Assembly: GCA_002269645.1 (NCBI GenBank)
Contig: NIVC01000423.1
Location: 62,001 to 126,000 of the forward strand
Direction of reading: 5' to 3'
Origin: Macrostomum lignano
Lineage: Eukaryota
DNA: 64,000 bases
The position numbers and the translations under genes are program-made. Of this stretch, positions 6,661 through 58,424 are shown piece by piece. The notes below the pieces were generated by a model. The model did not search any database. It worked only from the letters and a program-made list of their open reading frames with translations, and was not told the DNA's origin. Each line of letters begins with the position of its first letter. Position 1 is the stretch's first letter.

Positions 6661-6751
6661 CTATGCGAGCTAAAACTGACAAAAATGAAAATCAAGAATC
6701 TCACAATGGAGTGAATAAGGCTCAACACTGCCTGATTCAAACTCAACTCAC

Positions 6752-7028: not shown

Positions 7029-7029
7029 G

Positions 7030-9106: not shown

Positions 9107-10630
9107 TTTCGAGTTCATGAAATTTCGAGTTTATGAAATTTCGAGTTCATGAAATTTCGAGTTCATGAAATTTCGAGTTTATGAAATTTCGAGTTCATGT
9201 AATTTCGAGTTCATGAAATTTCGAGTTTATGAAATTTCGAGTTCATGAAATTTCGAGTTCATGAAATTTCGAGTTCATGAAATTTCGAGTTCATGTAATT
9301 TCGAGTTCATGAAATTTCGAGTTTATGAAATTTCGAGTTTATGAAATTTCGAGTTTATGAAATTTCGAGTTCATGAAATTTCGAGTTCATGAAATTTCGA
9401 GTTCATGAAATTTCGAGTTCATGAAATTTCGAGTTCATGAAATTTCGAGTTCATGAAATTTCGAGTTCATGAAATTTCGAGTTCATGAAATTTCGAGTTC
9501 ATGTAATTTCGAGTTCATGAAATTTCGAGTTTATGAAATTTCGAGTTTATGAAATTTCGAGTTTATGAAATTTCGAGTTTATGAAATTTCGAGTTCATGA
9601 AATTTCGAGTTCATGAAATTTCGAGTTCATGAAATTTCGAGTTCATGAAATTTCGAGTTCATGAAATTTCGAGTTCATGAAATTTCGAGTTCATGAAATT
9701 TCGAGTTCATGAAATTTCGAGTTCATGTAATTTCGAGTTCATGAAATTTCGAGTTCATGAAATTTCGAGTTCATGAAATTTCGAGTTCATGAAATTTCGA
9801 GTTCATGAAATTTCGAGTTCATGAAATTTCGAGTTCATGAAATTTCGAGTTCATGAAATTTCGAGTTCATGAAATTTCGAGTTCATGTAATTTCGAGTTC
9901 ATGAAATTTCGAGTTTATGAAATTTCGAGTTTATGAAATTTCGAGTTTATGAAATTTCGAGTTCATGTAATTTCGAGTTCATGAAATTTCGAGTTCATGA
10001 AATTTCGAGTTCATGAAATTTCGAGTTCATGAAATTTCGAGTTCATGAAATTTCGAGTTCATGAAATTTCGAGTTCATGAAATTTCGAGTTCATGAAATT
10101 TCGAGTTCATGAAATTTCGAGTTCATGTAATTTCGAGTTCATGAAATTTCGAGTTTATGAAATTTCGAGTTTATGAAATTTCGAGTTTATGAAATTTCGA
10201 GTTCATGTAATTTCGAGTTCATGAAATTTCGAGTTCATGAAATTTCGAGTTCATGAAATTTCGAGTTTATGAAATTTCAAGTTCATGAAATTTCGAGTTC
10301 ATGAAATTTCGAGTTCATGAAATTTCGAGCTTATGAAATTTCGAGTTCATGAAATTTCGAGTTCATGAAATTTCGAGTTCATGAAATTTCGAGTTCATGT
10401 AATTTCGAGTTCATGAAATTTCGAGTTTATGAAATTTCGAGTTTATGAAATTTCGAGTTTATGAAATTTCGAGTTCATGTAATTTCGAGTTCATGAAATT
10501 TCGAGTTTATGAAATTTCGAGTTCATGAAATCTCGAGTCCATGAAATTTCGAGTCCATGAAATTTCGAGCTTATGAAATTTCGAGTTCATGTAATTTCGA
10601 GTTCATGAAATTTCGAGTTCATGAAATTTC
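9107..10630. repeat. 16-bp satellite (GTTCATGAAATTTCGA), ~95 copies; unit contains nTTCnnGAAnnTTCn
   Basis: Direct periodicity. Confidence 0.97.
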
Positions 10631-15058: not shown

Positions 15059-16072
15059 CTCTACTGATTTGAGATTCAACTCCGATCTATAACCACTCAA
15101 TACAAGTGTACACTACTTATATAGATACAGAAGAATTTTTAATTAAAATCTCTGCCAGCATAGCTGATTCCATTGAGAATTATGTGCTCGTGATGCCCTC
15201 GATCGTACTTGTTAAGCTGTATCGCGGATTTTATCATAATTTCCAAATAACCGAGAACCTCACTTAATTTTTATTTTCTAACCAGTCACACATGTTAATT
15301 TATCCATAAAAGTATCCATCTTGCAACAGAATAAGAAGTCTTCTGCATGTATATTTCATTAAAGTTTGCAACTAGATCTAGAGTTTGCATTAGGAATTCC
15401 AAGTGCATATAACTTCCGTCATCTACACGCCCGCCCCGAGTCTAACAACTCAAAAACTATTGCTGAGTCCTGAGACTCATGTAGCTATTTTGAGTATTGC
15501 TAGAATTTTAGCAATTTCCAAAATTCCATAATGGGGTGCCGGTAGGTTGCAGGCTGGCTAAATAACTGAGCTTGTACACATTTTGCTAGTACGCTCGCAG
15601 ATATCTCTCTGATACACAAACTGCTACTTGTCTTACCTATTATACACTTCTCTGCACGATATTCTCTTCCTCTGCAACTCTTACCGCGTGTTTCAGACCG
15701 CAAATAAGGCATTTTCTTTCCATTTTTCTTTCTTTTTCATTCTGCTGTAGTGTCTCTGTGCGAAGCGCTCCACCCCTCGACCTCACTCTGCACTCATTTT
15801 TCGGGCCGCAGATCTTAATAAATTCTAGTCTGACTCGACTCGGACTGCAAACTCCAACAACCCCTTCTCCAACCCTCTCTGGAAAACGCAGTTTTGGAGC
15901 TGGGGGTTGACTGATCTGCACGAGTTGGCTTGACACGCAGTGATCGCAGCAGCAGCAGCAGCAGCAGCAGCAAATATTAGTCTAAGGAAACATAAGTAAA
16001 ACTCATTGGCTTAAATATTTCCTGTTGCGCGTTACGACACTTGAATTGGGATTCAAATCGGTTCAAGCAAAA

Positions 16073-18978
16073 ATGCTGTTGAATCACGGACTGCTTTTGC
16101 TTCTTCTAATAGGCAGCGCAGTGCAGTCGTTGGCCGGCAGTAAGGTCAAGAAGAACTTTTGCGACGGAGAAGAGTTTCGCTCCATCTTGGAGGGCATCCA
16201 GCTGCCGTCCTGTCTAGCGGCTAACAAAGAAGATGCCAGCAAGCCGGCAAGAAACTGTTCCATCATCCAGCATTTTGCGCGTCGGGCGCAGGAGCAGGAC
16301 CAATCGCTGGACACCTTCATGAGCCGCGTCACCGTATTGATCTTTGCTCATAGCGAGTTCATGGAAGAACTGACTGTGCCAAACAATCCAGCCCTTGAGA
16401 TTGCCAGCGAAATGGAGCGCCACAACTCGTACATTGGCGTTACAAAGTGCCTGAAATCGGCCAATTCAGCGTGTCAACGACTGCGCATTGCCTGCACAGG
16501 TGGATACGTTAGCAAATTCGTATTCCTAATCAGCGGCCACTGTTCGCAGAATTTCGGCTGCTCGCTGATTGAAAACAAAGAGAAAGAGCGTCCTACCACT
16601 CTGCTCAACATGCTTCAGTACGTTCATTTCCGAATGGTCGAACGGCAGGCCTACATTGCTAAAGAGCTGGGCGAGCTGCGACTGACTACTTCCACTGGTA
16701 CCGAGTATCTCATCCAGTCGGAGCTGGATGATTCCAATGGCAAGCAGTTGACTTCTGGTGCAGCTCTACCTGTAGCCGTGTTCTCTGCTGGCCCGGTAAT
16801 AAACCTGGCTTATTACCAACAGTTGGCTTGGTTCCTGGAGGCGGCATTAACCCTGAAATCGAGCTTCGCTTTCCACATCATAGCCACTCCTTTGAGCTAC
16901 ATCGAAAAGGAGGCTGATCGACCTCTGTACCGATGGAAGATTCGAGAGCATGAAAGCTTTCTAGCGTTGTACACGAGACAAATCTGCTCGTCAGATGCCA
17001 AGTGGGTTTTCAGTTGTAAACCATTAATGAAGATCGCTAACGAGATGCTCGTTCCTGAGCAATATTCTGCATTCTTGCTGCACGGAGTGTTGGCCGCCCA
17101 TTCATTGCCAGGCACTTCGTATCCGACGTACAAGTCTACTGCAGTTAGTGAGCTCAGCGACTTTGTTCACAGTACAGCTTCATACGTTTTGGCTGTCATG
17201 CCAGTAGACGAACTTCTCACAGATCCGATGATCAGCCTGGAGATGATGGACTCGTTGACGTCATATCTGGGCTCGTCCTTCAGCATAACTTACTATCCTG
17301 TTGTTCTCAACAAGGCCACGGCTCTGCAGATTCTGAAGGACGTTGACACTGGCTTAAACTTGCAGGAGGTATTCGAGCGACCCTGCTACTTCATGCGATT
17401 TCCCAATGGGGCGTTTGCTGTGCTCAAAAATGACGAACCGATCGCAACTTTGGACTCAACTGTGCGCCATATAGCTCAGGAGGGCAGCTACCAGATCATT
17501 ATCCAGTCATCTCGAGAAGTCTTTAATACCGACGTGGCTGAGCTGCCTGAAAAGTTGATTAAAAGCGGCCACATCTCCGGCGAAATGGCCCGAGCGGACG
17601 AAGACACAAAAGATTTAGTAGACGAGATTCGAGTCAGCAATCAAACAGATGCCTTCGTTGAGCAGCTGAAATTCAGGGATATTTACAATGTCTCGGGCGT
17701 TTTAGTCGTTGAATCTGACGATAAGTTAATGAGCAATTTTTTCGAATTAGCCGGTAAAGACAAGCCGTGGATGGTTTTGTTCACCGTGTCCTGGAGCCCG
17801 CTGTGCAAGGCTGCCCGATCTATCTGGGCCTCCGTTGGCGACTGCGCCAGACGACTGGGCTTCCCGGATGTTCAACTAGTCAAGATCGACTGCTTTGAGG
17901 GCAACGAAATCTGCCAGAAGCTGGGCGTCCTTTCCTATCCACGATTGCCATGTTCAGCAGGGGCATCCAGCTGAACACCTACTCGGGCCCGATTGTCTCT
18001 GATGATCTGTGCTTGTACACGAAGCTCGCCTTCGAGCCGCCTGTCGTTCCAACCAGCTCCGAGCAGGAGACGCAGCAGGTTTTGAAACAGATAATCTCCC
18101 TAAAACCGCGCGCATTCGTGTATCGAGGCGCCGAATTGCCTACCAAATTGGCAGTCTTCGCCAAGTCCAATCGATTCCGTGAAGTCTTTGTTCACGAGAA
18201 GAACAACAAAGACAAAGGTACGTTGACCGCCGTCCACCGAGACGCCAAGCCAAGCGTGAGTCCGTACAGCGGCTCCCTGGACGATGCTACAGAGCTGGCC
18301 AACTATGTTGAGAACAATCACCTGGACTCCGTGTTCCCCTGCACCTGGGTGTACCTGCCATCGGCGCTAAAACGCAACCGTCCGTTAGCGATTCTGTTCC
18401 ACGTTGACAACCAGAACGAAAGCGCCGACATGCTGGAGCACCTCCGAGCCAAGTTCACCGGTCGAGCCACCGTCTGCCACATGAACCTGCGCCACTTTAG
18501 CCATCTGAACGATCTGGTGCACCAGCTCTCGGGTCTGAATCTGCCAGCTTTGGTTGCTTTGACAAGGCCTGCGGGCTCCAGCAATAGGCTCATCCACAGA
18601 CTGCCGCTGGGCAAAATGGCTCGCTCTGAGCTGTCACAGCGCGCGGCCGACTGGCTGGAGAAGGCGGTTAACAACCAGCTGACCGATGGGAAGTCGGTGG
18701 AGCCTCGGCAACCCTGGCAGCCGGCCACGCAGGTGTTCAACTTTGTCGACCAGGTGTACCACGGCAAGACCTATTCAGCAAACAGGGAGCGCAGGCCGCA
18801 CAGCAGTCGCGCCTTCACGGCTGACACGGAATCGCGGGCTACTGACGACGTTCGCGATGCCGAAGACGACGAGGCCGCCCCCGCCGCTGAAGCGGTTGAT
18901 CCGGCGGCCAGGATGTCCATGAGTGCTGAGCAGGCATTCGCTCCGTCCGGGGCGCACTCGGCCAGGGAAGAGCTCTGA
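16073..18978 (+). CDS. ER-luminal thioredoxin-fold (PDI family, TXNDC16-like) protein, intronless, ~968 aa, one -1 frameshift at ~17947
   Basis: Signal peptide MLLNHGLLLLLLIGSAVQSLA; Trx-like domain VLFTVSWSPLC...VKIDCFEGNEICQKLGVLSYPRL continuing into MFSRGIQLNTYSG in the next ORF; C-terminal REEL ER-retrieval signal; TXNDC16 assignment is from remembered similarity only. Confidence 0.75.
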
Positions 18979-27109: not shown

Positions 27110-28098
27110 TCATCTCGTCTTAGTCGAATTAGGCGACTCCGATGGCGATGAAGTTGTTGAATTGGTTGCATCAATGGCAGTTGCTGTTGTCACGGTGATG
27201 GCTTCTGTGTACTGTAGCTGCTGCTGCTGCTGTATCTGATGCAGCTGCTGTTGAAGCTGCGACGCCAGCGGAGGCAGCGGCGGCAGCCCCGGCAGCGGCG
27301 GCAAAGTCGAAGTTGCTCTCAGCTGATTGGCCAGGAGCGCCAGAGCGGCATACTGACTGTACAGACCGCTGAAGTCCAGAGGCAGCGACGGTGGTGGCGG
27401 AGGCGGCGGCGGCGGAGGCGGCGGCGGCGGCAGCGGCATTGAAGCTCCGCCAGCAGCAAACAGGACACCAGAAGCAGAAGCAGCAGCCGAAGTTGTTGCA
27501 GAAGAAGCAGGCATTGTTCCCGGCCGGGTTGGCGGGTTGGGGATGTTGTCGAAGACTTTCTGCTTCGCTGAGCGGCTGCTGCTGCCGGCATCCGGTGTGC
27601 ATGCGGGGAAGTCGTCTCGAGAAGGCCGGCACTGATGCTGGTAGGGGTGCTGGTAGGGGTGCTGGTAGGGATCAGCCGAGGCTCTGGGACTCCCAGAAGA
27701 CATCAGATCGTCAATACGGAAGCTGCTTCGAGCGGTTGTCGCCGCTGACATGCTTGCGGTGGCGGCTGCAAACAGTCGCGGCCGCTTCTGCATCTCGGTA
27801 GCTGAGGAGCCAGTCCCATCTTCATCAAACTGTTGACCGGCAGCTTCAGCATCGGCTGTCGATCCCGCAGACTCGGCCGGCTTCTGACGCCTCTTCCGCC
27901 GTCTGTAGTTGCCGTTCTCGAACATCTCCTCGCAGTTCTCGGCCAGCGTCCAGAAGTTGCCCTTGCCCGGGCGGCCTTTGTCGCGCTGGACTTTGACGAA
28001 GCATTCGTTGAGTGACAGGTTGTGCCGGATGGAGTTCTGCCAGCCCTGCTTGTTCTCGTGGTAGTAGGGGAAGTGGTCCATGATGAACTGGTAGATCC
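27110..28098 (-). CDS. FOXL1: Forkhead box L1, exon 2
   Basis: [51 protein letters not shown]...[13 protein letters not shown] (GRPGKG and GNYRRRKR are FoxL1-type, not FoxC/L2); acceptor CGCGCAG phase 1; eh1-like SFRIDDLM at ~27701-27724; poly-P, poly-Q. Confidence 0.88.
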
Positions 28099-28220
28099 CT
28101 GCGCGTGAAGGCGGTGTGACGGATTTTTGTGGTGTTGAATTAATTGCGAACATTTTTATGGGCCTGACTTTTTCATATGCTCCTCATCCTCAGGCGCTTC
28201 AGACACTTCGATTGTCAAAA

Positions 28221-40762: not shown

Positions 40763-42615
40763 AGGTGCTGGCGCCCCTGGTGCTGGAAATATTTTGCTCT
40801 GTGACTTGGAATTATGAGGACATTCAAGGGCGCTTGATTATGTTACGCGGACTATGTGTGCTATGGGTCTTGGCCTCACCGTGTGAGCTCAGTATTTACC
40901 TGAAGCAACAATTGTTAAAGGTGCTGCAGCTCAAGGTGCGGCAGATCGACCCTGTTTAGTGGGATTAAAATTCTTGCATTTTGTATAAATACAACATTCA
41001 GAAATGCATGTACAGTCACTGAATACACGGTGACTGCAGTATTTGGCTGTCTGTCTGTTTGCCAATAAACGGAACAGCTAACAAAGCCTTGAATCATTGT
41101 TGCTGAGCCAGTGTTTGACTTTAATTTTTCTCATTTCTCTCTGCCTCCGCTCAAAATGCATGCATAATTCTCAGGCAGAAATGACGATTAACTTTGTTAG
41201 AATTTGAACAAGCGATGATTATATTGCTGCAGCTGTGGAAGTGGCACATTTCGATTTCTCCAGCTTTCTGCAGTTTCTTCCTTCCGCGATCAGAATTTCT
41301 TTTTTTTTCATCTTTTGGTTGAAATTGGCCAAAGAAATTTTTGATGACTTTTTGCCACCCCGCAAACTGGGGGTGTTTGCTCAATATTTACCCTCCCTCT
41401 CGCTTATACAAGTTGCAGCGATATTTTTTCGCTTGCTCAATATTTGCATTCAGCAGGAAAAGCCAATTTTTGTATTTGGCTGAGAAAAACCTGCCAGGGT
41501 TTATAGATTGCTTGTAAGAACACTTTCCTCTCGGTTATTCTCTCCAAGGCAAAGCAATTTAATCGGAAAAGTGACTGTAAATGCGCTTGAAAAATCATTT
41601 GATTGCTACTGTTAGTAGTGTTATTAAGACCAGTTATCTATTTTGGTAGCAGAAATTAATCTCACTCTAGATTCCCGTCGGTGTACATCACAGTACAGTA
41701 TTTCAAGGCACAAACTTTTCAAAGTCGTAGAATTTCTATTTTGTTGATGTTTTCGAATTTCGACTAAAATAAAAGTGAAGCCAAAGTTTCCTGTATTATA
41801 CGAGCTAAATTTGCACTGGAATTGCTTGCTAGCTTCGTAATTGCTATTTTAAGAAAAAAGTGCTCTTACTCACGAGTCTTACAAAAAAAGTCAGAAAATA
41901 CTCGAGTTGGCGAGTTGCAACTGTAGGAACTTAATTATTTGCCAAAAGTCAGTACACAAAATTAACCTCAGTAATTTCCCGAAAGTAAAAAGGTTATTTT
42001 TACGAATTACATACTTTTCTTTTCGCCCTTTGCTTGGCGGCTTCGCTACACTTTCTAGTCTTTTCTAGTTCGCTCGCTCCACGATTTCCTATTTACGAAT
42101 GGAAATTTACCATCGGAATAGAATCAGTGAGTTTGCTTGGTGCGATTTCAAAAAAACAAGCACGTGGTGGATAACAGGTGAGAAAATTACTTTGGTTCCG
42201 CTACATAGGAATCCTAATGATTCAAACAGGGGGGAGCATGCAATCATGCAGTCACTCGCTGATTGAGTGATTTTGATGCTCTTTACGCCACCACACGAGA
42301 CACGCGCGTGCCTAAATGACCTTGGGAAAACCCCCTGCCCGAGCGCGAGAAGCAAGGAAAAGCTTTGGGTAATGTACACTTCAATGTGCACTTACAAGCG
42401 TGTGTATGAAGTTAACGCCCAAAATAGACAGGAAGGGTCACAAATATTCAAGGCCCCTCTCTCCCTTCAAGAGGCCAAGAGACCACGCGGCTGAGAACTG
42501 ACTAAACTGTACAGTGAAACATATAAAGCAACGAAACACTTGGGAGGAATTCCTCATTCCAAGTTCTGAAGCAAGCCAAGGAGGCAATTGTCGCAAGTTC
42601 AAGCAACAATCGACA

Positions 42616-42986
42616 ATGGCTTCAACGGGAGTCCTAGCAGACGATGAATCGCTCTCATCATCGCCAAGCTGCAATCGAGGTCGTCAGCGAACTATTCGCA
42701 TTGACGTAATTCTACTAGACGGAACTCAATGCCAGGTGTGCCTAGATTACCGAGCCAACGGCCAAGACTGCCTGGACAAAGTCTGTCAGTGTTTGGGCGT
42801 ATTCCACGAAGTCGATTATTTCGGCTTAACCTACTTCGGCGCCAAACGCGAGGAGCTGTGGGTTAATATGCGCAACCGTTTGTACCAGCAATTGCCAACG
42901 ACCCTGGCGCTTAACGGCGTCTATCGGCTTTATCTAAGAGTCAAATTCTATGTGCCGCCTCACATGATGCTCCACCAGGAGACCAG
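42616..42986 (+). CDS. MYLIP: MYLIP/IDOL E3 ubiquitin ligase (FERM+RING), exon 1
   Basis: ANGQDCLDKVCQCLGVFHEVDYFGL...LWVNMRNR...LRVKFYVPPH matches IDOL FERM F1 ([24 protein letters not shown]...LRVKFFVEPH); donor GTAAGA phase 2. Confidence 0.9.
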
Positions 42987-43052
42987 GTAAGAAACAAAGC
43001 ATACTTAACCATACAATTCGGTTTTTATATCAGTAGCCAGGCCGGGGATAGT

Positions 43053-43690: not shown

Positions 43691-44263
43691 GCACCAAGTT
43701 TACCTGGACGTCCGGAGTCGACTACTGGACAGACATCACTGGCTGCTGGACAAGGAGCTTCAACAAGGTCAAGGATCTCGGAGTCCAGATTCGGGCAGCG
43801 ACGCTTCGTCGTCATTCGACTTAGAGGACAACAGTCATGAGGAGCCTCTGGCAGCCCGACTGGCCGCTTTAATTGTCCAAGCAGATTTTGGCAGCGGATC
43901 CTTGAGCAGCAGCAACAGATTATGCCGACAAATCTTAAGCCGTCTGCTTGACTTCAACGATGAAGACAGCTGCTACAACGACAATGACAGCAGCGGCGGC
44001 AGCGGCGGCAGCTGCGGGACTGACAGTTTCAGGGAGGAATTCTTGGAATTGTGCAAATCTGCCATGGAGTATCACAATAAATTGTTGGAGTTGTCACCAA
44101 CGGCGGCAGAGTACAGGCTGTTACAGACAGCATCAGCTGGCTTGTCAATGTACGGCAGTCACTATCACGAGGCTAAGGATCATTTGGAGTCCAGACTCAA
44201 TGTGGCCGTTGGTCCCGACGCTGTTTGGCTGTGCCGCCCGGATGCTAAAACTGCATTCGAAAG
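43691..44263 (+). CDS. MYLIP: MYLIP/IDOL exon 2 (FERM F2 and start of F3)
   Basis: Acceptor CACAG, donor GTAGGT, 573 nt phase 2/2 open; LAALIVQADFG, AAEYRLLQ, YGSHYH, VAVGPD. Confidence 0.88.
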
Positions 44264-44583
44264 GTAGGTGTTTTTTCGGGGGGCCGATATGTTTCTTAAT
44301 AAGTTTTTTCACTCGAAATTTATAACTCCGATATGTATCGAAAATAGATAATAGCGTCTGAAATAATGTCTTGCCGATATGTATAGAAAATAATCAATGC
44401 ATCGATATTACATATCGATATAACTTCACGCCGATATGTATCGAAAATAGTTTTTGTGTCCGTCATAATTTCCTGCCGATGTGTATCGAAAGTAAATGTT
44501 TTTAAAACACTTATAATGTGCATGTTTAAATTAGCTACTTCGTTTTCTTTTAAACAAAAATCTATTAAATCTGTACGTTGCAG

Positions 44584-44843
44584 ACATCCTTATCCGAGAG
44601 TGCAACAGGTGACAATTAGCGATCGATTTCTCTACCTGTCGCTGAGCCAAGAGAACGGCAGCATCAGAGAAATGGGATTCCGGTTGGCCAGCCCCAAAGC
44701 GGCGAACTGTCTGTACCGGTGCGTCACGGAGACGCACAGCTTTTTCCGGTGCGACACGGTTCGAAACAATGTGTCTACAAAGACTTGCCGCGATGTGAAG
44801 GGCGCGTTTGTGTCGCTCTTTGTTGAACGGGAGCTTTCGTCTG
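44584..44843 (+). CDS. MYLIP: MYLIP/IDOL exon 3 (FERM F3)
   Basis: LYRCVTETHSFFRCDTV...RDVKGAFVSLF matches IDOL LYRAITETHAFYRCDTV...RDLKGHLASLF; phase 2/1. Confidence 0.9.
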
Positions 44844-44850
44844 GTGAGTT

Positions 44851-45815
<965 letters not shown>

Positions 45816-46377
45816 CATCTCCAGGGGTTTACTTATTAGCCAGCTGAGCTACTGACGTCATTAAGCTTACTTGGGTAAAAACGTTTCGTGCCTTCTTTGA
45901 GCTGCAGTTATTATTCTTTGCAGAATTTTAGAGGTTATGGTAGCAAAGGCTATACTGACAGAATAGAAAGGTTGACGGCTGGCCCTTCCAAAAGGGGGTG
46001 TGTCTCTCCTTGTGTGTATCTTCTTGACTCTGACAATAGGCTAGATAGATGTGAATCTATATGAGCCTCTAAACTGTTGCTGCAGGCTTTGAACTTGTGT
46101 TAAAGTAAAAATTTGTCACAGCTGCTGGGAGTCGTAAATTATGTGTCACTCTGTCCAGTCTATTATTCTGTTTTAATCTGCTCTTTTTGGACCGTGTGAT
46201 AAATTTTACTTAAATCAGAAAATAGTGCTCAAAGCTTTTTTGACTTGTGTAACCTACGCTGCTACGCGTATGGCTAGTAAGTAGGTTTTTTCGTCAACAG
46301 TCTACTAACAGTAGAAAAAGTAGCTTATATGCTTTTTTATTTACACAATAATCTAAAAATATATCCAACATTTTCAG

Positions 46378-46547
46378 TTCGCAATTTTGTGTTCGACGTG
46401 CGACGCACAGCGAAGGAGGTGCACGACAATGCGAGGCGGCAGTTGCACAAGTGCCTGTCTGCCGCTTCCGCCGCTCCAGGCATTTCCGGTGCCGAGGCTA
46501 AGAAAGTGGAAGATGTGGACAGAATTTCAGACAAAGGGAACGACGAG
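46378..46547 (+). CDS. MYLIP: MYLIP/IDOL exon 4
   Basis: FVFDVRRTAKEVHDNARRQL (IDOL [20 protein letters not shown]); acceptor TTTTCAG, donor GTAATT, phase 1/0. Confidence 0.88.
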
Positions 46548-46633
46548 GTAATTTTACAATCTGTATATTAACTTCTGTGCTTCGCTAAAACTGAACTGAT
46601 TAATAGAATGAACTAAAAAATGCATATTTCCAG

Positions 46634-46840
46634 ACTCGCGCCAGTCTACTCGAACGAATTCGTCGACTAGAGCAGTCGCGCCTATGCCAAATCTGCTCAG
46701 ATGCCAGCGTTTCAATTGTATTCCTGCCCTGCGGTCACATGATGGCTTGCGGCGGCTGCGCCAACCGGCTGGAGACCTGCCCGATCTGTCGAGCAGAAAT
46801 TTGCACACGGCAAGCCTGCTTTGTTCCTTGGCAAGACTGA
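46634..46840 (+). CDS. MYLIP: MYLIP/IDOL exon 5 (C-terminal RING); joined protein 526 aa
   Basis: Not in the ORF track; translates TRASLLERIRRLEQSRLCQICSDASVSIVFLPCGHMMACGGCANRLETCPICR...WQD*; acceptor TTTCCAG phase 0. Confidence 0.9.
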   Translation, partial: TRASLLERIRRLEQSRLCQICSDASVSIVFLPCGHMMACGGCANRLETCPICRAEICTRQACFVPWQD

Positions 46841-49149
46841 TTAATACACACTGTGTATATGCGTGTGCGATATCGTTTTTCTGCCGATATGTATGGAAAC
46901 AATTATAAATTGAATTCTTAATATCCAGAATGAAATGCACCGATATGATAAAGATTGATATAAATTTCAATTACAGTTTTCTGGTGAGGATTCTACAGAT
47001 ATGTTTCGAAGCATTTTATATAGTTGATTCTAAAAGTTCAGACTAGACTGCGCCGATATGTATCGAAACGAATTCAAACAATTAAAAAGGCGTGTTGAAG
47101 TTAACATCTATGTTATATGTGGCTCATATTAAATCTATCATTTAAATCAAATTAACTAAGGTCAACTCTAGTTAACCAATGGACTGATCCTTGATCTCTG
47201 GCGTAGCTCTGTGATGGATTTAATTTACACTTTCAGAATTTTGATTTCATAATTTTGTTGATTATGGTGTTAACCTTATATTTCTTATAATTTAGATTGA
47301 GTTAAATATTTGATTTCTTTCTTCAGTTGTAAAATTTTGTCGCATACACACAAGTAAATATTAAACCCTATTGTGGCTTTCTGGCAATACCTCGAACAAA
47401 TACCGTACACTTGAGTGCATTGTATGACTATGTAAATTTATTTAAACCTATACTCCCCGTGTACATGTAACGTGTATACTTTCTAATCTTTGTGCAAAAC
47501 AGCTGCAGTTTGCAAATTTGCAAGGTTTAAATAAAATGATTCACATTCGGATTTTACTGTAAATGTACATGCATGATAGATATCGATTTTTCATCTATGC
47601 TTTTAACAATTAACTTTGCTTTTGCACTGCTGCAAAAGTCTGTGCAGTGTATGTGCTGTCCAGCTTCGTGGAATTCTTTTAAACAGTGTTTTTAACAGCT
47701 AATATCCACTTTCATGTAAGTACACTTTGAACTTGTCGTTGACCTGCTGTCAAAAATATACACTATACAGTGAACATCAAAGTTGTAGTTTAACTGCATC
47801 GCCAGTTTTTTTCAACGAGAAAACATTGCGGTTTTCTGTCTGCTTACCGCTAAATTTCTGTAATAAGTTTACACGTATTCGATAATAAATTTTATTAAAA
47901 ACCCGAATTTGAAGCCGTATATATACGTATATGTACATGAATTTCACAGGTAAAATGACAATGACAAAATGTACAAATTTACTTGTAAAGAAAAAAATTT
48001 GTAAAATTTCGTGTGCGTTTGTGTCACGACCTGAATAAAGAATTTACAATGCTCTTAACTGTACGTACATATAGTACATGTCAACTCGTATTTTGTCTAC
48101 ACAGAGTATAAAGATAGTACACAGGTAGTAAACCGGACCAGAACCGGAAATTTGTTGAAGTTCGACACATGCAGATCGGTGTCTAACGCAGCCTGGTGTT
48201 TGAGTGTCATTAAAGCTTTTGGTTCCAGCTTACATGTACAGCTGATGTACATCAGTACATGTGCATGTACATGTTATTGGCTTTGACAGTTCGACGAGAT
48301 TTAAAAGGCACCAATATAGCTAGTCCGTTATCACAGTTATTTTACTCTGTCTTCAGTGTATTTTTTTCTACTGCAAGTGCACTTTTGCTGATGAGTAGGT
48401 GGGCTAGTATTGCTGCAGCTGCAGCAGCTAGCTGTGTGACGTGTACATGTACAGTGTAAGTGTACATGCTGTCAGTTGTCAACTCAAAATTAATCGTCTC
48501 GACTATATAGCCTCGGGTAGGGTTTTGTAATGAATTTGCGAAAGTTGTTAAAAAACAAAAATATCAGTTGTCTAAGGATGTTGTGATATTGTTCCATCCA
48601 TCCAGATTCGATTCAATACCTATAATCAAAATTTCAATTCAAATTTGCGCCAAAAGAAGCACTAGTTTAATAAACTACTTCAAAAATTTTATTATGCAAT
48701 ATAAGCTAAAAGTACTCACTTACTCTTTAATTAAATAAATTAAGTAAGCATTGCTTTTGATGTGTTTGAAGGAGTTTCCCTTGCAATTTTGTCATTTTTG
48801 CGAACCATATTTAAACGGTTTTTCAACCGACGACGTTAAAACAGCGCGGCTAAACGGGCTAATTGTGCTAAGTGCCTAGTCCTGAGTTGGATAGATTCAC
48901 ATCGTGGGGGGTTTGGCATGCCTATTGACTATTGATGACTTTCTATAAAATTTGCTGTTAGAAATCCAAGATCATCATCTAACTATCCACCCAACTGCGG
49001 GCACTTCATAATGACTTAGGCCCTAGTCAATGGCTCGTCTCGTTTGCTGATGAGTGATGAGTGATGACTGACTGATGAGCTTTGCAGGGTTCATTTATTA
49101 ACATTAAGCCTCTATTTGAGAATCAAATTATGATGCCTTTATGATTCAA

Positions 49150-49310
49150 AGTGGGGTTCAATTCCCGATCCCACTGGAACAATTTTTGTCCTTGAGCAAG
49201 ACACTTAGGTCCTACCGGCCTAACTCTGTCTGAGCTGCATTGCTTCAGTTTACCGACGAAACCGACACAGCTATCAAATGGGTAGCTACCAGCATTAGCT
49301 GGGGTAATTA
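49150..49310 (+). mobile_element. tRNA-derived SINE fragment (CORE-SINE-like)
   Basis: B-box-like GGTTCAATTCCC followed by TGTCCTTGAGCAAGACACTT and AAATGGGTAGC, resembling the CORE domain of MIR/AFC-type SINEs; no A box or TSD resolved. Confidence 0.5.
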
Positions 49311-50399
49311 TGGGTGTGTGTCGACCCCCCGCCTCCAGTTCTTGGACTAAACAGAAACAGCTGTGTGCAGCAGTGCAGTCTGTAGATGTGCCATGCAATA
49401 GCTGTGGCTTAGGCTTAGCTAGCTTACTAGGCCTAGGCCTACTTTTTATACCTTAACACTTTGAAGATAGCATCTATATATATTCAATCAAATTATAGAT
49501 TCTTTTTACTATTATCAAATATTTGTCAAATTCTATTTAGAAAAAGCATCTTTAAATCATTTTAGACAACATGGCTAACCAAGTTGCTTTTAATAGGCCT
49601 AGGCCTTAGCTTTTTGATATGATTATAGTGATAAGCAATACAAGGTTATCATTTGTATTTGATGGTTACAATAGAAATATTGAGTGTGTAGCTATACTAT
49701 AGGCAGGGTCTTAAGGGAAAAGTAGAATGAAACTAAAAAATAAGCTTTGCAAAAGAAAGAATATAATATTATAGACTTAAAAAAAATTACAGAATAAAAG
49801 TTGAACAAAGCTTAAGCCATATAATATATAACAAAGACAGAAAAACAATAGGCCCCTTAATGCATTAAAGCTCTAGGTTGAGCTCTAATGTATATATAAA
49901 ATATATTATATCCTTTTTATGGAACAAAAGGCATAGGGCCAATATTTGTGCATAGACATTAATAACAATCATAGAAAAACTGTTTAAACTATTGGAAATG
50001 ACTAAGGCCTATGCCAGAGTATTAGGCCTATATTAAGTAGGCCTACATAATTAAGTAAAATAGTTTTTGGTTATCTCAAGAATCCTTTTTGGAAAAATTG
50101 ACATTTTATAGGTGGCTATCTAGTATACTTTAAAAAGTGCACCTTTCTAATGTAGCATGGTATACCAAAAGGGTTAAAGGATAATATACCAGATAGGCTA
50201 AGGGGTAGCACTCTAAAAAATAGCACATGTTCGAAAAGTGGCACATAAAAGTAATAGCATATTTGAGGGTAACAAACATACTTATATTATCCTTCTAGCT
50301 GCACCAAATTGCAGAAGGCTTTATCATCTTCATAGTCTTGTAAAGCTACCAAATTTTCATAGTAATTTTAGTTAAAAAACATTTTAATAATAGTTAGTC

Positions 50400-52354
50400 T
50401 GCAGGCCAAGGTGAGAAGATATGCAAAGTTTAATATTTTTGACATAAATTTCTACTAAGTGAAAATAATAAGCTGCTTATTAGGCCTAGCTAAATTAAAA
50501 AAACTTAAGACTCTTAACTTATAAGAGGTCTTAGGCAAGTTGATCATTGTCAATAGGCCTACTATCATTTGTTTAATAAAAATCAGACAAATTGTATAGG
50601 ATTAAACTATTAAATATTAGCTGATAAAGTAACTTATTCATAGTTACTCTTGCTATTTACCCATTTGCCCCCTAGATTGCAGTATACAAATAGTATACAA
50701 AGTGTGTTGTGTTATGCTAAACACTAAGAATTTATTCCAATAGGGTCAAGAATTGTCTATAGTCAATCAAAGTAAAAAGTGATCAAGTGCATAGCATGTA
50801 TAGGTGCTATGACAGGGCAACATAGCCATATGCTCTTGGTTTAGACTTTGTTCTATAGCAATGGTACCTAGATCTTTATCTCTTGATTCTTCGTTGATAT
50901 TTGGAACTGAAGAATCAGTTCAGTTTCATAACCTTCCTCCTTGTCTGTGGCAAATGGAATAGCTATAGGTACTAGTTGATTTGTACTAGCTAGGTGCAAG
51001 CTTATTTTTAGCCAGAATCAATATAGTTATTTTGTCCTAAAGTCATTGAAATATGCTTGAGACCATGTCTATAAACCTAGTCTGATTCATTAGGTAGCTT
51101 TTTGACTTGTGAAAGAAAATGTGCCATCCAATAGACTAAGGCTAATTTTTTTGCACTGGGTTCTTTGCTAATACTAAGATATAAAATTGCATCCAAGGTC
51201 CAATTTAAAGATGCAGTTTCATAACCTTCCTCCTTGTCAGTGGCAAATAGAATAGCCATAGGTACTAGTTGATTTGTACTAGCTAGGTGCAAGCTCTTTT
51301 TAGCCAGAATCAATACAGTTATCTTGTCCTAAAGTCATTAAAAATATGCCTGAGACCATGTCTACAAACCTAGTCTGATTCATTAAGTAGCTTTTTGACT
51401 TGTGAAAGAAAATGTGCCATCCAATAGACTGAGGCTAATTTTTTGCACTAGGTTCCTTGCTAATGGGCCTACTAAAATATAAAACTGCATCCAAGGTCCA
51501 ATTTAAAGATGCAGTTTGGAAAGTCATAATATATAGTATTCCTATTGCACAAAAATAAACCTAGGTTATATAGCAGCTGCCTAGTTGATTGCTTTGTTAC
51601 ATAAAAATATGTAAGAGATTTAGCTAATGGGCCCACTATATAATTTTGTAATTTTTATATCAGGAAGGCTTCTGTGCCATTCAAAGTAGCCATTAGTAAA
51701 AAGCACCATGTCTAGCTCTTGGCTGTCTTGTCCCTAGGACCATTGGACAATTGCCCTGGGTCCAGGTGAATATGTAGCAGTTCTAGAACTGGCTAGTTTA
51801 GACAAGCAACAAGTTCTTGTGACTGCATAGCTTGCTATTATAGTGGCAGCTTAGCAGCATGGTCTTGTTTAGGTGGGAGATATCTATGGTGTCATCCAAC
51901 ACCTATATCACATCTAGGAGCTTGCATATCTTCTTTAAGTTGATTTTGGTCAGTAGCTTTTATCCAATTCTTGCAGGCACTTTTTGGTGTCCTATTTGAA
52001 CCAGTTGTCAAAGTTTTCTCAATAGTTTTCAAGTAATCATGATAATCATCATATAGAGTCAAGGATATAGAAGCAGGCTTGAAGTTGCAGATTATAACCT
52101 GCAACCTATTATAACCTAGACTGGGCTCATTTGCTTTTCAACTTCAGCTGCAACTCAATAGAGTGCTTGGTGAACTTCTGCAACAACTTGGTCAAGTGGA
52201 TAGTGCAGCCAATCAAGGCAGTTACAAATAAAACCAGCCAAAAAAGCCATTAAGCTGTGCATCTGGACAGGAAGATATGCAACAACCCATGGGTTCTTGT
52301 GAAAACAGCCAGCTCCTTTGTGGCACTAGTCATTGTATAGAGCTGGGCTTGCAT
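50400..52354 (-). pseudogene. DEG/ENaC (amiloride-sensitive channel family) pseudogene, copy B, many stops and frameshifts, internal ~295 bp tandem duplication
   Basis: Manual translation: FTRTHGLLHIF (HG motif), TM1 WLFWLVLFVTALIGCTIHL, VIICNFKP, SHLNKTMLLSCHYNSKLCSHKNLLLV*TSQF*NCYIF, IGWHIFFH, in canonical ENaC order; left boundary uncertain. Confidence 0.8.
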
Positions 52355-52544
52355 TTTTGTATCCTGTTTAATAGAATGCTGCAGATTTTATAATTCAATT
52401 ACTAACAAGATTTTTGCTAGTGTCTAGAAAATATCTAGTAGACTAAAGCTAATTGTTCTATAGTAGCTGTTTAATGGCTTTGCTATATAAGAATATGCAA
52501 AAGATATAGCCAATAGGCCAACTATACAATTTTGTAATTGCTAT

Positions 52545-52745
52545 ATTAGAAAGGCTTCCATGCCATCTAACATAGCTATCAGTGAAGTACACCATGTTCA
52601 GCATGCTGGGTGACTGCCATAGGTCTAGGTGGAAAGTTCAGCATTTTTAGAACCAGCTGGTCTAGACAAGCAAAAAGTTCTTATGACTGCATAGCCTGCT
52701 ATTATAATGGCAGCTTAGCAGCATGGTCTCATTGAAGTGGGACTT
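52545..52745 (-). pseudogene. DEG/ENaC pseudogene fragment, copy A (diverged paralogue of the extracellular segment)
   Basis: SHFNETMLLSCHYNSRLCSHKNFLLV*TSWF*KC*TF...LNMVYFTDSYVRWHGSL aligns with copy B at ~51660-51880. Confidence 0.75.
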
Positions 52746-53962
52746 TATTTATCCCATTATTAGGAGCTTTAAACAGGATATAATCAAGTAAAAAACATAG
52801 TTAATAATTAATTTATTAATTAAAAAACATATTACTATTAATTAGATTTCTTATATATAAAAGCTATTATTATATTATATCTTATATTCCATATGCAAAT
52901 GGCCTGGATTTGTTTCCACTTAGATTGTGCTAGCTTTTAAACAATCAAATAATAAATCTTTAAAGTGATTTTTTAGCTATTTAAAATCTCAAAAAATAAA
53001 TAAACTTATGTCTCTATTGCAGCCAATGGTTCATATTGTTTACAATGTCTAGCACAGATTGGCCCTTGGCAGTGCAATTGGGGTCTAGCACTGACATGAT
53101 TTAGCATGACAAAGGAGGGCATCCAGTGCAGTTCAGACCTTAGCTGCAATAGGAGCTCAAATTTAATGGTTTAAATTCTCTAACTCTTAATATTTTAGAT
53201 TTAAGATAAGAAAGACAAGATTAGGCTTAAGTTATTAGGCTTAAGAGCCTAAGTCAGTATAGTCCAAGGTAGAAATTTAATGAAAGGAAAAACTTGTATT
53301 TTTCAAAAATAATCTATCAGTGTAAATATGCTTTATCTAGAATTTTTTTCTAAGGTAATAAAAATTGGGAAAGTTATATCCCCAGACTTAATGCAAAAGT
53401 TACAAAACTTTTAAAGCTGCAATTTTGCTATGATAGTAGTTCTATCATTGTATATGCTTTATTTATCTGTATTTGCTATGATAGAAGTGGTAGATCAAAT
53501 TCTGAGTGGTAGAAGTGAAAGAGCATACCCTCATTCACAACCTTTTAAACAAGCTCTAGGAAATCACAATGATGAATAAGGTCACGAATTCATATAATCA
53601 TAGTCACAATTGTGATCAATTTAGTTACTAATAAACTTGTCTAACACTGCACTCTAAGTCGGGGGTCAGTAAACTTCAACCCACAGGCCACAGACAGCCT
53701 ACAAAGCCTGTCTATCTAACATTTGGGTCCTTTGAAACTTCACAATTGCAATCCAAGCTTTCTTAAGGTTTATGCCTTCTGAGATCTCTTCTCTCTTACT
53801 CTCTCCTCGTCTCAAGTGGTTTGGCAACAACAATTTACTGCTTTTTGTGCAATCGAGATTACAAACTAACTATTAAACAAAATAAATTACTTTTATATTT
53901 CATGAGCATAATTAAAGATTGTTTACTCAACTTGTTACTGACAGTAGCTATATTCTGCGGTA

Positions 53963-54574
53963 ATGTCCGAACAGGCAGAACAGAAGCCTCCCCAATCGGA
54001 GGAGAATTCCTCAGCAGATCCAGGCAGTTTGTACGAGGCCTATCAGAAACAGCAGCAGGACATTGAAAATGAGATAGCCATGGCTCAGGCCCTCATCACG
54101 CCAGCTATACCAACTAGCAACCTGAAGCAAGAGTACACAGACGACCCCGTATTCTTAGCCAAATGCGAGCAACTATGCGCTCGGTATCCTCGTCTGAGAC
54201 GAACCCGAGGCGATGGCAACTGTTTTTATCGAGGCTTCGGATTCGCTTATCTGGACCAGCTGCTTCAACAGCCGCCAGAAGCTGCTGCCAAACTTAAAGA
54301 AATCTGTCGACAAAGAAAAGACGCCATTATAGAGTTGGGCTATTCATCCGTTACGGTTGACGATTTTTACGACGCTTTCTCCGAACTAGTTGAGACTGTT
54401 GAGAGGCGAGAATGCTCTACTGCCAATTTGGAGTCCGTGTTTAACAATCCCGGTCAAAGCGATTATGTTGTTGTGTTCTTGCGCTTACTAGTCAGCGGTC
54501 ATTTGCAGACACATGCCGACTTCTTTCAGAGCTTTCTGGACGGAGAGCAAACTATTAAAGACTTTTGTGCTACG
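53963..54574 (+). CDS. OTUB1: Otubain deubiquitinase, exon 1
   Basis: LRRTRGDGNCFYRGFGFAYL (catalytic Asp/Cys), SDYVVVFLRLLVSGHL; donor GTTAGT phase 0. Confidence 0.93.
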
Positions 54575-54594
54575 GTTAGTGGTTTAGTGGAGGA

Positions 54595-55205
54595 GGATCG
54601 TCGAGAATGTCGGTTTTGAAGGATCCTTGGAATGTCGGTTTTGATGGATCCTTGAGAATGTCGGTTTTGATGGATCCTTGAGAATGTCGGTTTTGATGGA
54701 TCCTCGAGAATGTCGGTTTTGATGGATCCTCGAGAATGTCGGTATTGTTGTGTCTTTGAGAATGTCGGTTTTGATGGGGATTTTGACAATGTCGGTCTTG
54801 ATAGGGATTTTGGGAATGTCGGTTTTGATGATCCTCGAGAATTCGGTTTTGATGGATCCTTGAGAATGTCGGTATTGTTGGGTCTTTGAGAATGTCGGTT
54901 TTGATGGGGATTTTGACAATGTCGGTCTTGATAGGGATTTTGGGATTATCGGTTTTGATGGATCCTTGAGAATGTCGGGTTTTGATGGATCCTCGAGAAT
55001 GTCGGTTTTGTAGGATCCTTGAGAATGTCGGTACTGTTGGGTCTTTGAGAATGTCGGTTCTGATGGGGATTTTGGGAATATCGGTTTTGATGGATCCTTG
55101 AGAATGTCGGGTTTTGATGGATCCTTGAGAATGTCGATTTTGATTTTTCTTTGAGAATGTCGGCTTTGGTGGGTCTTTAGGAATGTCGATTTTGTGGGAA
55201 TCTTT
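54595..55205. repeat. 26-bp minisatellite (GAGAATGTCGGTTTTGATGGATCCTT) in OTUB1 intron
   Basis: Direct periodicity with variants. Confidence 0.92.
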
Positions 55206-55330
55206 AGGAATGGATGCTTCGGTTCTAATGAATGATTTTGTGGTCTTGTCAGTCGCCTAATTTTATCGCCCGCCTTCAAAGCGCAGCTCACCGTCTCTGA
55301 CCCTGCCAACTCGAACTCGAATCCCCGCAG

Positions 55331-55534
55331 GAAGTGGAGCCAATGCGTCACGAATCCGATCATATTCACATAATCGCTCTGACTCAAACCCTGGAGACCT
55401 GCATCGCGGTTGAGTACATGCACCGCGATGGCGCCGGCATCAGTCGGCACACGTTCCCGGATGACGGCCAGTCTGTTCCTGTGCTCACCCTGCTGTACCG
55501 GCCTGGCCATTACGATATTATTTATGATAGTTGA
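55331..55534 (+). CDS. OTUB1: Otubain deubiquitinase, exon 2; joined protein 271 aa
   Basis: EVEPMRHESDHIHIIAL...LLYRPGHYDIIY (catalytic His); acceptor CCCCGCAG. Confidence 0.93.
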   Translation, partial: EVEPMRHESDHIHIIALTQTLETCIAVEYMHRDGAGISRHTFPDDGQSVPVLTLLYRPGHYDIIYDS

Positions 55535-56177
55535 ATTGTGCTTGACTTGGTCCGCTTGCTAACTGGACTCAATCGACCCATGAATTCTTTACAATATTGA
55601 ATATTGAAGCATTAAGTATGAATTAAAATCTAGCAGTTCTCTTAAGAGTTATCTACTTGTCCAATTTAAGTTAGAAATATAAAATATTCGAAATTCAAAT
55701 CAATAAAAAAGTAAGTACTACTTATGCTAATTAGTAGTATAAGTCCTAATTTTACATCACTCCTTCAATAGAGCTACATAAAGAGAACTTCAAAGTGTAT
55801 GATTAGTTAATAATTGTTTTGCTTTCATCGAGTATCTAACTTATAATATTTAAAACTAAATTGATCATGCTCCCGTGTTTCTATCTTCAGTAGCATGTTT
55901 GGAGATGTGAGTAGCTTAATTTGAGAAGCGACTTTCAAATTAAAAAAAAATCTTTCCATGAGTTGCATATATATAGCTATGCGGCTTTTGTTTTGCCTTT
56001 TGATGTCATTCTCTACGCTGTGTTAAGTAGTATGATTTGTTGTTTGTTTTCATAATTATACTTGTCTTTGCAAACCTACCTGAGGAAATCCATTCGAATA
56101 TCAACCAAGTATTGTTCCACTGAAAATTGACGTTTTTTGATATGGTAAACCGGGTAATTGGGACATAGGCTCGGAGG

Positions 56178-57925
56178 GCAAATGGGAAGAAGGATCGGAA
56201 GGTAAATGGGAAGAAGGATCGGAGGGTAAATGGGAAGAAGAATCGGAGGCTAAATGGGAAGAAGGATCGGAGGGTAAATGAATGGGAAGAAGGATCGGAG
56301 GCTAAATGGGAAGAAGGATCGGAGGGTAAATGAATGGGAAGAAGGATCGGAGGGTAAATGAATGGGAAGAAGGATCGGAGGCTAAATGGGAAGAAGGATC
56401 GGAGGGTAAATGAATGGGAAGAAGGATCGGAGGGTAAATGGGAAGAAGGATCGGAGGGTAAATGGGAAGAAGGATCGGAGGGTAAATGGGAAGAAGGATC
56501 GGAGGGTAAATGGGAAGAAGGATCGGAGGGTAAATGAATGGGAAGAAGGATCGGAGGCTAAATGAATGGGAAGAAGGATCGGAGGCTAAATGGGAAGAAG
56601 GATCGGAGGGTAAATGGGAAGAAGGATCGGAGGGTAAATGAATGGGAAGAAGGATCGGAGGCTAAATGGGAAGAAGGATCGGAGGGTAAATGAATGGGAA
56701 GAAGGATCGGAGGCTAAATGGGAAGAAGGATCGGAGGCTAAATGGGAAGAAGGATCGGAGGCTAAATGAATGGGAAGAAGGATTGGAGGCTAAATGGGAA
56801 GAAGGATCGGAGGGTAAATGGGAAGAAGGATCGGAGGGTAAATGGGAAGAAGGATCGGAGGGTAAATGGGAAGAAGGATCGGAGGGTAAATGAATGGGAA
56901 GAAGGATCGGAGGGTAAATGAATGGGAAGAAGGATCGGAGGCTAAATGGGAAGAAGGATCGGAGGCTAAATGGGAAGAAGGATCGGAGGGTAAATGAATG
57001 GGAAGAAGGATCGGAGGGTAAATGGGAAGAAGGATCGGAGGGTAAATGGGAAGAAGGATCGGAGGGTAAATGAATGGGAAGAAGGATCGGAGGCTAAATG
57101 GGAAGAAGGATCGGAGGCTAAATGGGAAGAAGGATCGGAGGGTAAATAGGAAGAAGGCTCGGAGGGTAAATGGGAAGAAGGCTCGGAGGGTAAATGGGAA
57201 GAAGGATCGGAGGGTAAATGGGAAGAAGAATCGGAGGGTAAATGGGAAGAAGGATTGGAGGGTAAATGGGGAGAATGATCGGAGGGTAAATGAATGGGAA
57301 GAAGGATCGGAGGCTAAATGGGAAGAAGGATTGGAGGGTAAATGGGAAGAAGGATCGGAGGGTAAATGGGAAGAAGGATCGGAAGTTAAATGGGAAGAAG
57401 AATCGGAGGCTAAATGGGAAGAAGGATCGAAGGGTAAATGAATGGGAAGAAGGATCGGAAGGTAAATGGGAAGAAGGATCGGAGGGTAAATGGGAAGAAG
57501 GATCGGAGGGTAAATAGGAAGAAGGATCGGAGGGTAAATGAATGGGAAGAAGGATCGGAAGGTAAATGGGAAGAAGGATCGGAGGGTAAATGAATGGGAA
57601 GAAGGCTCGGAGGGTAAATGGGAAGAAGGATTGGAGGGTAAATGGGAAGAAGGATCGGAGGGTAAATGGGAAGAAGGATCGGAGGGTAAATGGGAAGAAG
57701 GATTTGAGGGTAAATGGGAAGAAGGATCGGAGGGTAAATGGGAAGAAGGATCGGAGGGTAAATGGGAAGAAGGATCGGAGGGTAAATGGGAAGAAGGATT
57801 GGAGGGTAAATGGGAAGAAGGATCGGAGGGTAAATGGGAAGAAGGATCGGAGGGTAAATGGGAAGAAGGATCGGAGGGTAAATGGGAAGAAGGATCGGAG
57901 GGTAAATGAGAAGGATCAGAGGGTG
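56178..57925. repeat. 24/28-bp purine-rich minisatellite (GGAGGGTAAATGGGAAGAAGGATC)
   Basis: Direct periodicity, occasional AATG insertion. Confidence 0.96.
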
Positions 57926-58424
57926 AATTAATCGAAATCCCCATACCTCGCCGGTCTCAAGTGGCCAGTCAAGTCAGGTCCTGGATGAGCACGCGACAGG
58001 AAATCAGTTATCTAAAAAATATCTATATGTTCATATTACCGAGTGCTGCAAGCATATAACGCGTATAATTTCATATGGTTTGACTTCTATTCCCGCTTCC
58101 ACTCGGGATTATTGTTGTTTAGGATAATTATATATATGCTTACTATTAGCAGGACAGATGATTGTTAATCTAGTGCTCTCAGCTAATTGAATTTGGGTAT
58201 TTTTGAGTCTATCGTGTGTTGGGTAGAATCAACGATTCCTGCAGGATCCGGGATCAAGGATTGAAAAGTTTTTTGGTGCTCGCATGTGGGGCACTCGGGT
58301 TGCATGAGACGGGATCTGCGTGATTTTATGGTGTCTCAGTCAGTAGCCAAGAGGCATCCCGCGGTGGATGGCTGATGTCAGAGCTTTGGGATTTCTAAAT
58401 ACCATTTAACAGCGAAGCCGGATG

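Follow-up and report, generated by a model that had tools for sequence, protein, structure and literature searches.

CpG dinucleotides decay in animal DNA that is methylated in the germline, both in the bulk DNA of vertebrates and in the methylated compartments of mosaic invertebrate genomes, and the observed/expected ratio of CpG (CpG o/e) in such domains is roughly 0.2-0.5. In fungi, repeat-induced point mutation (RIP) of the Neurospora type drives duplicated gene fragments from GC to AT, and some basidiomycetes show a CpG-biased hypermutation of methylated transposons, and fungal methylation may be confined to relics. Editing by APOBEC/AID enzymes leaves an excess of C>T or G>A changes in retro-copies. 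Here we describe a block of the Macrostomum lignano genome that has lost nearly all of its CpG and that carries the decayed N-terminal part of a DEG/ENaC gene. It lies just upstream of an otubain gene in NIVC01000423.1:62001-126000 of assembly GCA_002269645.1, the 64 kb stretch that was analysed and that is called the window below. We consider it probable that this CpG desert is a germline-methylated island losing its CpG by deamination of 5-methylcytosine (5mC), with methylation as the cause that we infer from the pattern of loss.

Counting found CpG only at 50232 and 50892 of the 4253 bp desert (49331-53584, GC 0.334), the two sites that the initial annotation had read, and base composition predicts ~118 in place of the roughly 100 estimated there. 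The CpG o/e of the desert was 0.017, and with the non-satellite DNA of the window as background, at most two CpG had a Poisson probability of 6e-44. Elsewhere in the window, CpG o/e was 0.91 in non-satellite DNA and 0.81 in AT-rich tiles, and the neighbouring AT-rich intergenic DNA stood at 0.86-1.0, so that low GC by itself was no cause of CpG loss here. Wherever else the window lacked CpG over a long distance, the gap coincided with a minisatellite array whose repeat unit has no CpG. The edges were as sharp as had been claimed. On the left, the 300 bp next to the desert contained nine CpG, two of them at positions 49322 and 49330, and the first 300 bp of the desert contained none; on the right, the corresponding counts were four and none. 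The flanks, the satellites and the long interspersed element (LINE; CpG o/e 1.1) of the window were also confirmed to have kept their CpG.

The minus-strand DEG/ENaC-like reading of the desert matched proteins of M. lignano, and the full-length M. lignano paralogue P0058 (591 amino acids) was used as the tblastn reference. The match had an E value of 3.5e-46 on the minus strand over residues 1-191 (52354-51768), in two blocks with residues 1-130 at 52354-51953 and residues 133-191 at 51941-51768, and residues 254-287 were found twice on the same strand, at 51440-51348 and 51156-51055. In total, ENaC relics occupied ~1.7 kb of the desert and corresponded to one N-terminal half of the gene, residues 1-287 of P0058; the C-terminal half was absent from the desert in the same search. 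Many stops interrupted the frame along the alignment, which also shifted frame at least once between the first transmembrane segment (TM1) and the “ICNFKP” motif, and the match to the Pfam family ASC (PF00858) was weak (E 8e-4, 19 bits), under the curated cut-off of 23.6 bits. On this homology and broken frame, the relic is taken as a DEG/ENaC pseudogene. The initial annotation had described two DEG/ENaC copies with an internal duplication, of which the duplication stood as a 293-bp tandem repeat, and the two copies were reduced to one N-terminal half (copy A) and a fragment of roughly 220-290 bp (copy B). The remaining ~2.5 kb (49331-51055 and 52742-53584) contained no ENaC sequence and no Pfam domain in any frame and had no further copy in ~150 kb of M. 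lignano DNA, and gene calling placed no gene inside the desert. Insertion of a mobile element was considered as the origin of the sharp edges and rejected, as the two edges shared no direct or inverted matches of at least 9 bp, and the block had no long inverted repeats, no tRNA and no Pfam domain other than that of the ENaC relic.

Two CpG-rich paralogues, L001 (NIVC01000349.1) and L002 (NIVC01000906.1), with a GC of 0.54-0.57 and a CpG o/e of 0.81-0.85, were compared with the relic. Over an alignment of ~740 bp, the relic was 72% identical to L001, the closer of the two, and 67% identical to L002, and because upstream non-coding DNA was included in the homology, the relic is not a retro-copy. 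The sites at which L001 and L002 agree stood in for the ancestral sequence. None of the 36 CpG shared by the paralogues survived in the relic, where 15 had become TG, 12 CA, six TA and three other dinucleotides. At non-CpG sites, C>T changes occurred at 0.21 of CpA, 0.22 of CpT and 0.14 of CpC, whereas T>C changes occurred at 0.014, an unpolarised ratio of ~14:1. On the sense strand, 28 of 142 non-CpG C were changed to T and 30 of 134 G to A. Neither a CpA preference nor a strand asymmetry was present in the non-CpG C>T changes against the paralogues, and the loss was specific to CpG, led to TpG or CpA and was alike on both strands, as in 5mC deamination. The initial annotation, which favoured a RIP-like system, had named alignment to an intact paralogue beforehand as a test able to overturn it, and the alignment gave an ordinary spectrum with only a CpG excess.

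The TA outcome in 18% of former CpG agrees with the prediction for an independent second hit at the general non-CpG rate of ~20%. Such second hits also account for the excess of TpA, for the frequent CTAG (from CTGG, CCAG and CCGG) and for the conversion of Gln, Trp and Arg codons to stops. The TpA excess reported earlier is real but modest (o/e 1.03 in the desert vs 0.82-0.86 in the flanks), and the motifs noticed with it were indeed frequent, with 38 CTAG in the desert against 13 expected, nine TAGCTA and seven TAGGCCTA. The suspected change of Arg codons to stops was recovered as well, as GCT CGA CGG (A R R) of the paralogue corresponds to GCT TAA TGG (A, stop, W) in the desert. A one-step or in-silico replacement of CG by TA was rejected, because TA was found at only six of the 36 former CpG and the rest were TG or CA. 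The equilibrium GC calculated from recent GC-to-AT and AT-to-GC rates was 0.26, and the desert, at 0.33, is therefore close to neutral equilibrium.

By 5' context, the rates of C>T change in the relic were ApC 0.23, CpC 0.23, TpC 0.23 and GpC 0.14. The value for TpCpG was 0.73 and that for the other contexts 0.47-0.58, and with these small counts no TCG-specific bias was demonstrated in the relic. APOBEC/AID editing resembles the desert in its C>T and G>A excess yielding stops; unlike such editing, the changes here were strand-symmetric and showed no preference for TpC or CpC. Additionally, the enrichment of GpC (o/e 1.8) with depletion of AC and GA was considered as the 5'-context signature of a deaminase and rejected (5'-context test, P=0.15). 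GpC o/e was higher in the relic (1.7) than in the paralogue (1.1), and ApC and GpA were lower; this is a matter of arithmetic, because CpG-linked C and G were lost, A and T were gained and GpC mostly survived.

A simple course of events would account for the block. It would be old non-functional DNA, made up of the decayed N-terminal DEG/ENaC fragment and of unidentifiable sequence, whose CpG have long carried methylation in the germline or stem-cell lineage, with unmethylated DNA on both sides. Spontaneous deamination of 5mC would have turned every CpG into TpG or CpA. Ordinary AT-biased mutation would then have lowered the former coding DNA from ~55% to ~35% GC and turned some of the new TpG and CpA into TpA, raising TpA, CTAG and stop codons. 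The stretch upstream of the otubain gene, which presumably holds its promoter, and the gene body would have stayed unmethylated and hence kept their CpG. The locus-restricted loss over a dead gene fragment does look like deamination of methylated CpG, as had been proposed, and the mechanism is the familiar decay of methylated DNA; no new mutational system is revealed. Like animal germline-methylated domains, the desert lost CpG to TpG or CpA on both strands with non-CpG changes at the background rate, and its neighbours, the otubain gene and upstream stretch, keep CpG. Unlike these domains, the depletion is far more complete, the block is small and intergenic or pseudogenic instead of a transcribed gene body, and the adjacent housekeeping gene body is undepleted in a genome whose sampled CpG o/e is ~0.9. 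What is unusual is therefore the completeness of the loss, the small and sharply bounded size of the block and its pseudogene/intergenic site in a CpG-replete genome. The coordinates of the features are collected in Table 1.

Table 1. Features of the CpG desert and its surroundings in window coordinates
Feature	Position	Strand	Remarks
CpG desert	49331..53584		2 CpG vs ~118 expected, GC 0.33; NIVC01000423.1:111331-115584
Left edge	49031..49330		CpG-bearing flank: 9 CpG/300 bp, 6 in last 77 bp
Seven clustered TAGGCCTA palindromes, two TAGGCCTAGGCCT runs among them	49428..50562		Motif counts
Tandem duplication, 293-bp unit x2	50921..51517		94-96% identical; remnants of residues 254-287 at 51055-51156 and 51348-51440 (minus)
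Main DEG/ENaC relic (copy A) with short upstream region	51696..52438	-	blastn 72% to L001:9903-10642
Partial second ENaC copy (copy B)	52455..52742	-	Residues 155-237 at 52742-52527; 73-77% to copy A 51565-51878
Right edge	53585..53962	+	Directly upstream of otubain start; CpG at 53585, 53660, 53808, 53854, 53958
First coding exon of otubain (OTUB1-like) gene	53963..54619	+	100% to M. lignano PAA83273.1; CpG o/e ~1

The locus taken from the source contig (NIVC01000423.1:105963-127534) was 100% identical to window 44000-58000, and the whole locus was present in two more contigs, L003 (NIVC01000424.1) and L004 (NIVC01000106.1). Their BLAST identity to the window was 92-93% with gaps counted; at aligned bases, the mean identity among the three copies was 93-98%, ranging in a mosaic from 90 to 100% per 250-column block. 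The desert occupied the orthologous place in both (L003 ~5750-9623, NIVC01000424.1:151778-155651, and L004 5436-9622, NIVC01000106.1:93555-97741), its right edge being identical in all three copies and its left edge nearly so, and three to five residual CpG were found inside it in each homeologous copy. The same desert with the same or nearly the same edges in three contigs indicates that it is older than the split of the copies and not an artefact of assembly. The 293-bp unit occurred once in L003 and twice in L004. Over window 48394-54594, the window and L003 were 100% identical at 50513-50760 and 52704-52951, and L003 and L004 were 99% identical at 50283-50512 and 52230-52479; this mosaic suggests that the copies have exchanged sequence by gene conversion or recombination. 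L003 and L004 also carried a GC-rich and CpG-rich retrotransposon of the kind without long terminal repeats (non-LTR), ~4 kb in size (L004:394-4359, L003:~1903-4375), with an uninterrupted open reading frame (ORF) of 1003 amino acids with reverse transcriptase and RNase H domains. Its insertion point corresponds to ~48400 of the window, which lacks it, so the copies differ by an insertion. Upstream of this retrotransposon, L003:1-1902 repeated the left portion of the desert (window 49219-51088) at 94.7% identity and likewise without CpG, and a local segmental duplication spanning ~5.5 kb of the L003 contig is the apparent origin.

Copies A (51555-51885) and B (52445-52750) were polarised with L001 as the outgroup. 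Six changes at CpG sites were specific to A, six were specific to B and six were shared, and at no fewer than three sites the same former CpG had become CA in one copy but TG in its partner, fates that are incompatible; a large part of the CpG decay thus postdates the A/B duplication. The outgroup-polarised ratio of non-CpG C>T to T>C was ~4:1, near the recent ratios of 2.7:1 in the desert and ~4:1 in the flank, which argues against a separate phase of non-CpG hypermutation. For recent changes, single-lineage changes among the three locus copies were polarised by majority rule. Over the three lineages, C>T had occurred at three of seven ancestral CpG of the desert, compared with a CpH rate of 0.058 per site (P=0.009); the flanking non-coding DNA had much the same rate at CpG (0.033) and CpH (0.037). 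The T>C changes that create CpG at TpG/CpA sites of the desert occurred at 0.0041, compared with 0.0254 at other T/A sites (P=9e-4). These results are suggestive of a CpG hypermutability that is ongoing and confined to the block, and loss continuing in three lineages suggests a chronic process and no burst. The recent C>T changes also followed a mild gradient, CpA 0.078 > CpT 0.049 > CpC 0.037 (P=0.04), which is a lead only.

The same data bear on a fossil of methylation, in which CpG was lost before the three copies split, the methylation has since gone and the sequence recovers slowly. Such a history is unlikely, although it agrees with a desert already present in the common ancestor of the copies with only ~4 ancestral CpG, and with the low 5mC that a review states for the species (PMC11292947). 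About 12 CpG-creating transitions (12.4) would be expected since the copies split and two were seen (P=4e-4), and ancestral CpG were lost at ~7 times the rate of other cytosines, both comparisons resting on small counts.

Several points weigh against a germline-methylated island. The tests for continuing loss depend on three and two events, on majority-rule polarisation and on conversion-like mosaic copies, which weakens them. A steady state of 2-4 CpG requires CpG loss at ~39 times the non-CpG C>T rate, above the ~10-18 times of mammalian methylated CpG. The ratio of 14:1 against the paralogues belongs to an older phase and exceeds the recent ratio, so a broader C>T excess in the past is possible. 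Nothing at the block explains why it would be targeted, as it showed no terminal inverted repeats (TIR) or target-site duplications (TSD), no transposable-element domain and no known transcript, and 5mC at this locus is itself something that we infer from its mutations. The machinery is reported to be in place, as reviews state that DNMT1 and DNMT3 are kept in M. lignano (PMC11292947, PMC9246332, PMC10658182) and that 5mC is present at a low level (PMC11292947, PMC10658182), all of them resting on Wasik et al. 2015. Together with CpG decay being standard in methylated domains, the DNMT1 and DNMT3 given in two of these reviews (PMC11292947, PMC9246332) leave little room for the claim of a system unknown in animals.

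As a germline-methylated island, the desert would be a pointer, drawn from sequence alone, to where germline methylation may sit in M. lignano. It suggests that 5mC lies in a few islands and not over gene bodies, because the adjacent housekeeping gene is undepleted, and near-CpG-free blocks offer a basis for a simple genome-wide scan for candidate methylated islands. A more specific and improbable version is that M. lignano focuses its scant 5mC on a few relic blocks, with a targeting system directed at dead or locally duplicated gene fragments, in the manner of methylation induced premeiotically (MIP), possibly guided by small RNAs. If this relic-targeted 5mC included some methylation of CpA, the mild CpA > CpT > CpC gradient would be explained. 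As in the basidiomycete pattern, methylation and CpG loss would then concentrate on a few dead sequences in a CpG-replete genome; unlike that pattern, the host is an animal, its DNMT1 and DNMT3 are canonical, and the target is a host gene relic, not a recognisable transposon. If true, M. lignano would present an animal parallel to the fungal way to “methylate and mutate the relics”.

A CpG-specific cause other than methylation, such as a local deaminase, a chromatin-dependent failure of repair at CpG or selection against CpG in an unannotated transcript, would suit the high implied hypermutability of ~39 times, and we give it only a small chance. The strand symmetry argues against editing coupled to transcription or reverse transcription, gene calling gave no gene in the block, and we know of no mechanism independent of 5mC that would remove CpG alone, and symmetrically on the two strands, from a block with sharp edges.

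Even less probable is a RIP-like or MIP-like defence, the reading of the initial annotation, in which the ENaC fragment was duplicated and a dedicated system of cytosine methylation or deamination, set off by the duplication, mutated the copies. The desert is like Neurospora-type RIP in the GC-to-AT decay of a duplicated gene fragment, in the many stops, which arose from Q, W and R codons through C>T and G>A, and in its sharply bounded AT-rich block. Local duplications do lie inside it, much of its decay came after a local duplication as the CA and TG fates in A and B show, and the mild recent preference for CpA points in the same direction. Unlike RIP, there was no CpA>TpA preference against the paralogues and CpA+TpG was undepleted. 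RIP requires a substrate index (CpA+TpG)/(ApC+GpT) of less than 1.03, and that of the desert was 1.45; the product index TpA/ApT was 1.11, which is non-discriminating because the flanks were already at 0.94-1.05. RIP also mutates all copies of duplicated DNA, whereas here the other repeats and the paralogues were untouched. The CpG-bearing satellite unit AAATTTCGAGTTCATG of the same window had a CpG o/e of 1.7-2.8 over its two tiles, the multi-copy LINE (1.1) has relatives elsewhere that are up to 90-100% identical, the sister ENaC paralogues stood at 0.8-0.85, and in L003 and L004 an intact-looking retrotransposon inserted at a distance of 0.9 kb from the desert is CpG-rich. The desert overshoots any detectable duplication by 1.6 kb and 0.85 kb, and its loss, going on in three separate lineages, looks chronic, where RIP depends on a methyltransferase homologue of the RID type and comes as a premeiotic burst. 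Taken together, this is evidence against duplication as the trigger of CpG loss. Finally, a foreign, misassembled or recently transposed fragment with an imported CpG-poor composition would fit the sharp edges and the ~2.5 kb of no recognisable origin but is barely credible, since the block stands at the same place in three contigs, ~740 bp of it including upstream non-coding DNA is 72% identical to native paralogues with CpG decayed site by site, its edges carry no TIR or TSD and its CpG loss continues in place.

The octamer TAGGCCTA occurred seven times within 1.1 kb of the desert and was absent from the rest of the window, and the 6-mer TAGGCC was ~25 times above its mononucleotide expectation in the desert. 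The sites of L004 were partly shifted, for example where the window has TGGGCCTA. Another TAGGCCTA was found at L002:19422, within another CpG-poor stretch on a different contig. The cluster may be a decayed short repeat or the YRGGCCYR end state of sequence under C>T pressure. The stretch in L002 (18960-20291), smaller, AT-rich and non-satellite, had five CpG where 32 would be expected and continues past the end of the retrieved locus, and a further AT-rich non-satellite stretch at 12750-13612 of the window had two against 12.6. Neither was related in sequence to the main desert. These stretches hint that CpG-poor blocks recur in the genome, in a sample too small for a frequency. L002:17501-18500 (GC 0.57), in a called gene of 329 amino acids without a Pfam hit, had 10 CpG against ~78 expected and is taken to be tandem-repeat sequence because it was lost from the scan masked for tandem repeats.

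Tandem repeats made up 38% of the window, with more than 25 minisatellite arrays of 11-34 bp units, several of them with a GGCGCC core, interspersed among ordinary genes. The whole window gave no Rfam hit. In the CpG-bearing left flank, 49130-49330 contained a string like the T-arm of a tRNA, GGTTCAATTCCCGATCCCAC, followed by GTCCTTGAGCAAGACACTTAGG, which we take to resemble the core of widespread metazoan short interspersed elements; ARAGORN found no tRNA there, and no other copy of the string was found in ~150 kb of M. lignano DNA. At 1102-3063, an ORF for a LINE reverse transcriptase had 65% GC and a CpG o/e of 1.1. Part of it was 100% identical to a UniRef M. lignano “PCI domain-containing protein” (P0257), an entry that probably represents a chimeric gene model with part of a LINE built into it. 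The other genes with long open exons, at 16025-18978, 27110-28153 (minus strand) and 42514-42990, were thioredoxin/PDI-like, a forkhead-domain gene and the N-terminus of a FERM and RING (zf-C3HC4_3) gene, the last of which ends near 46840.

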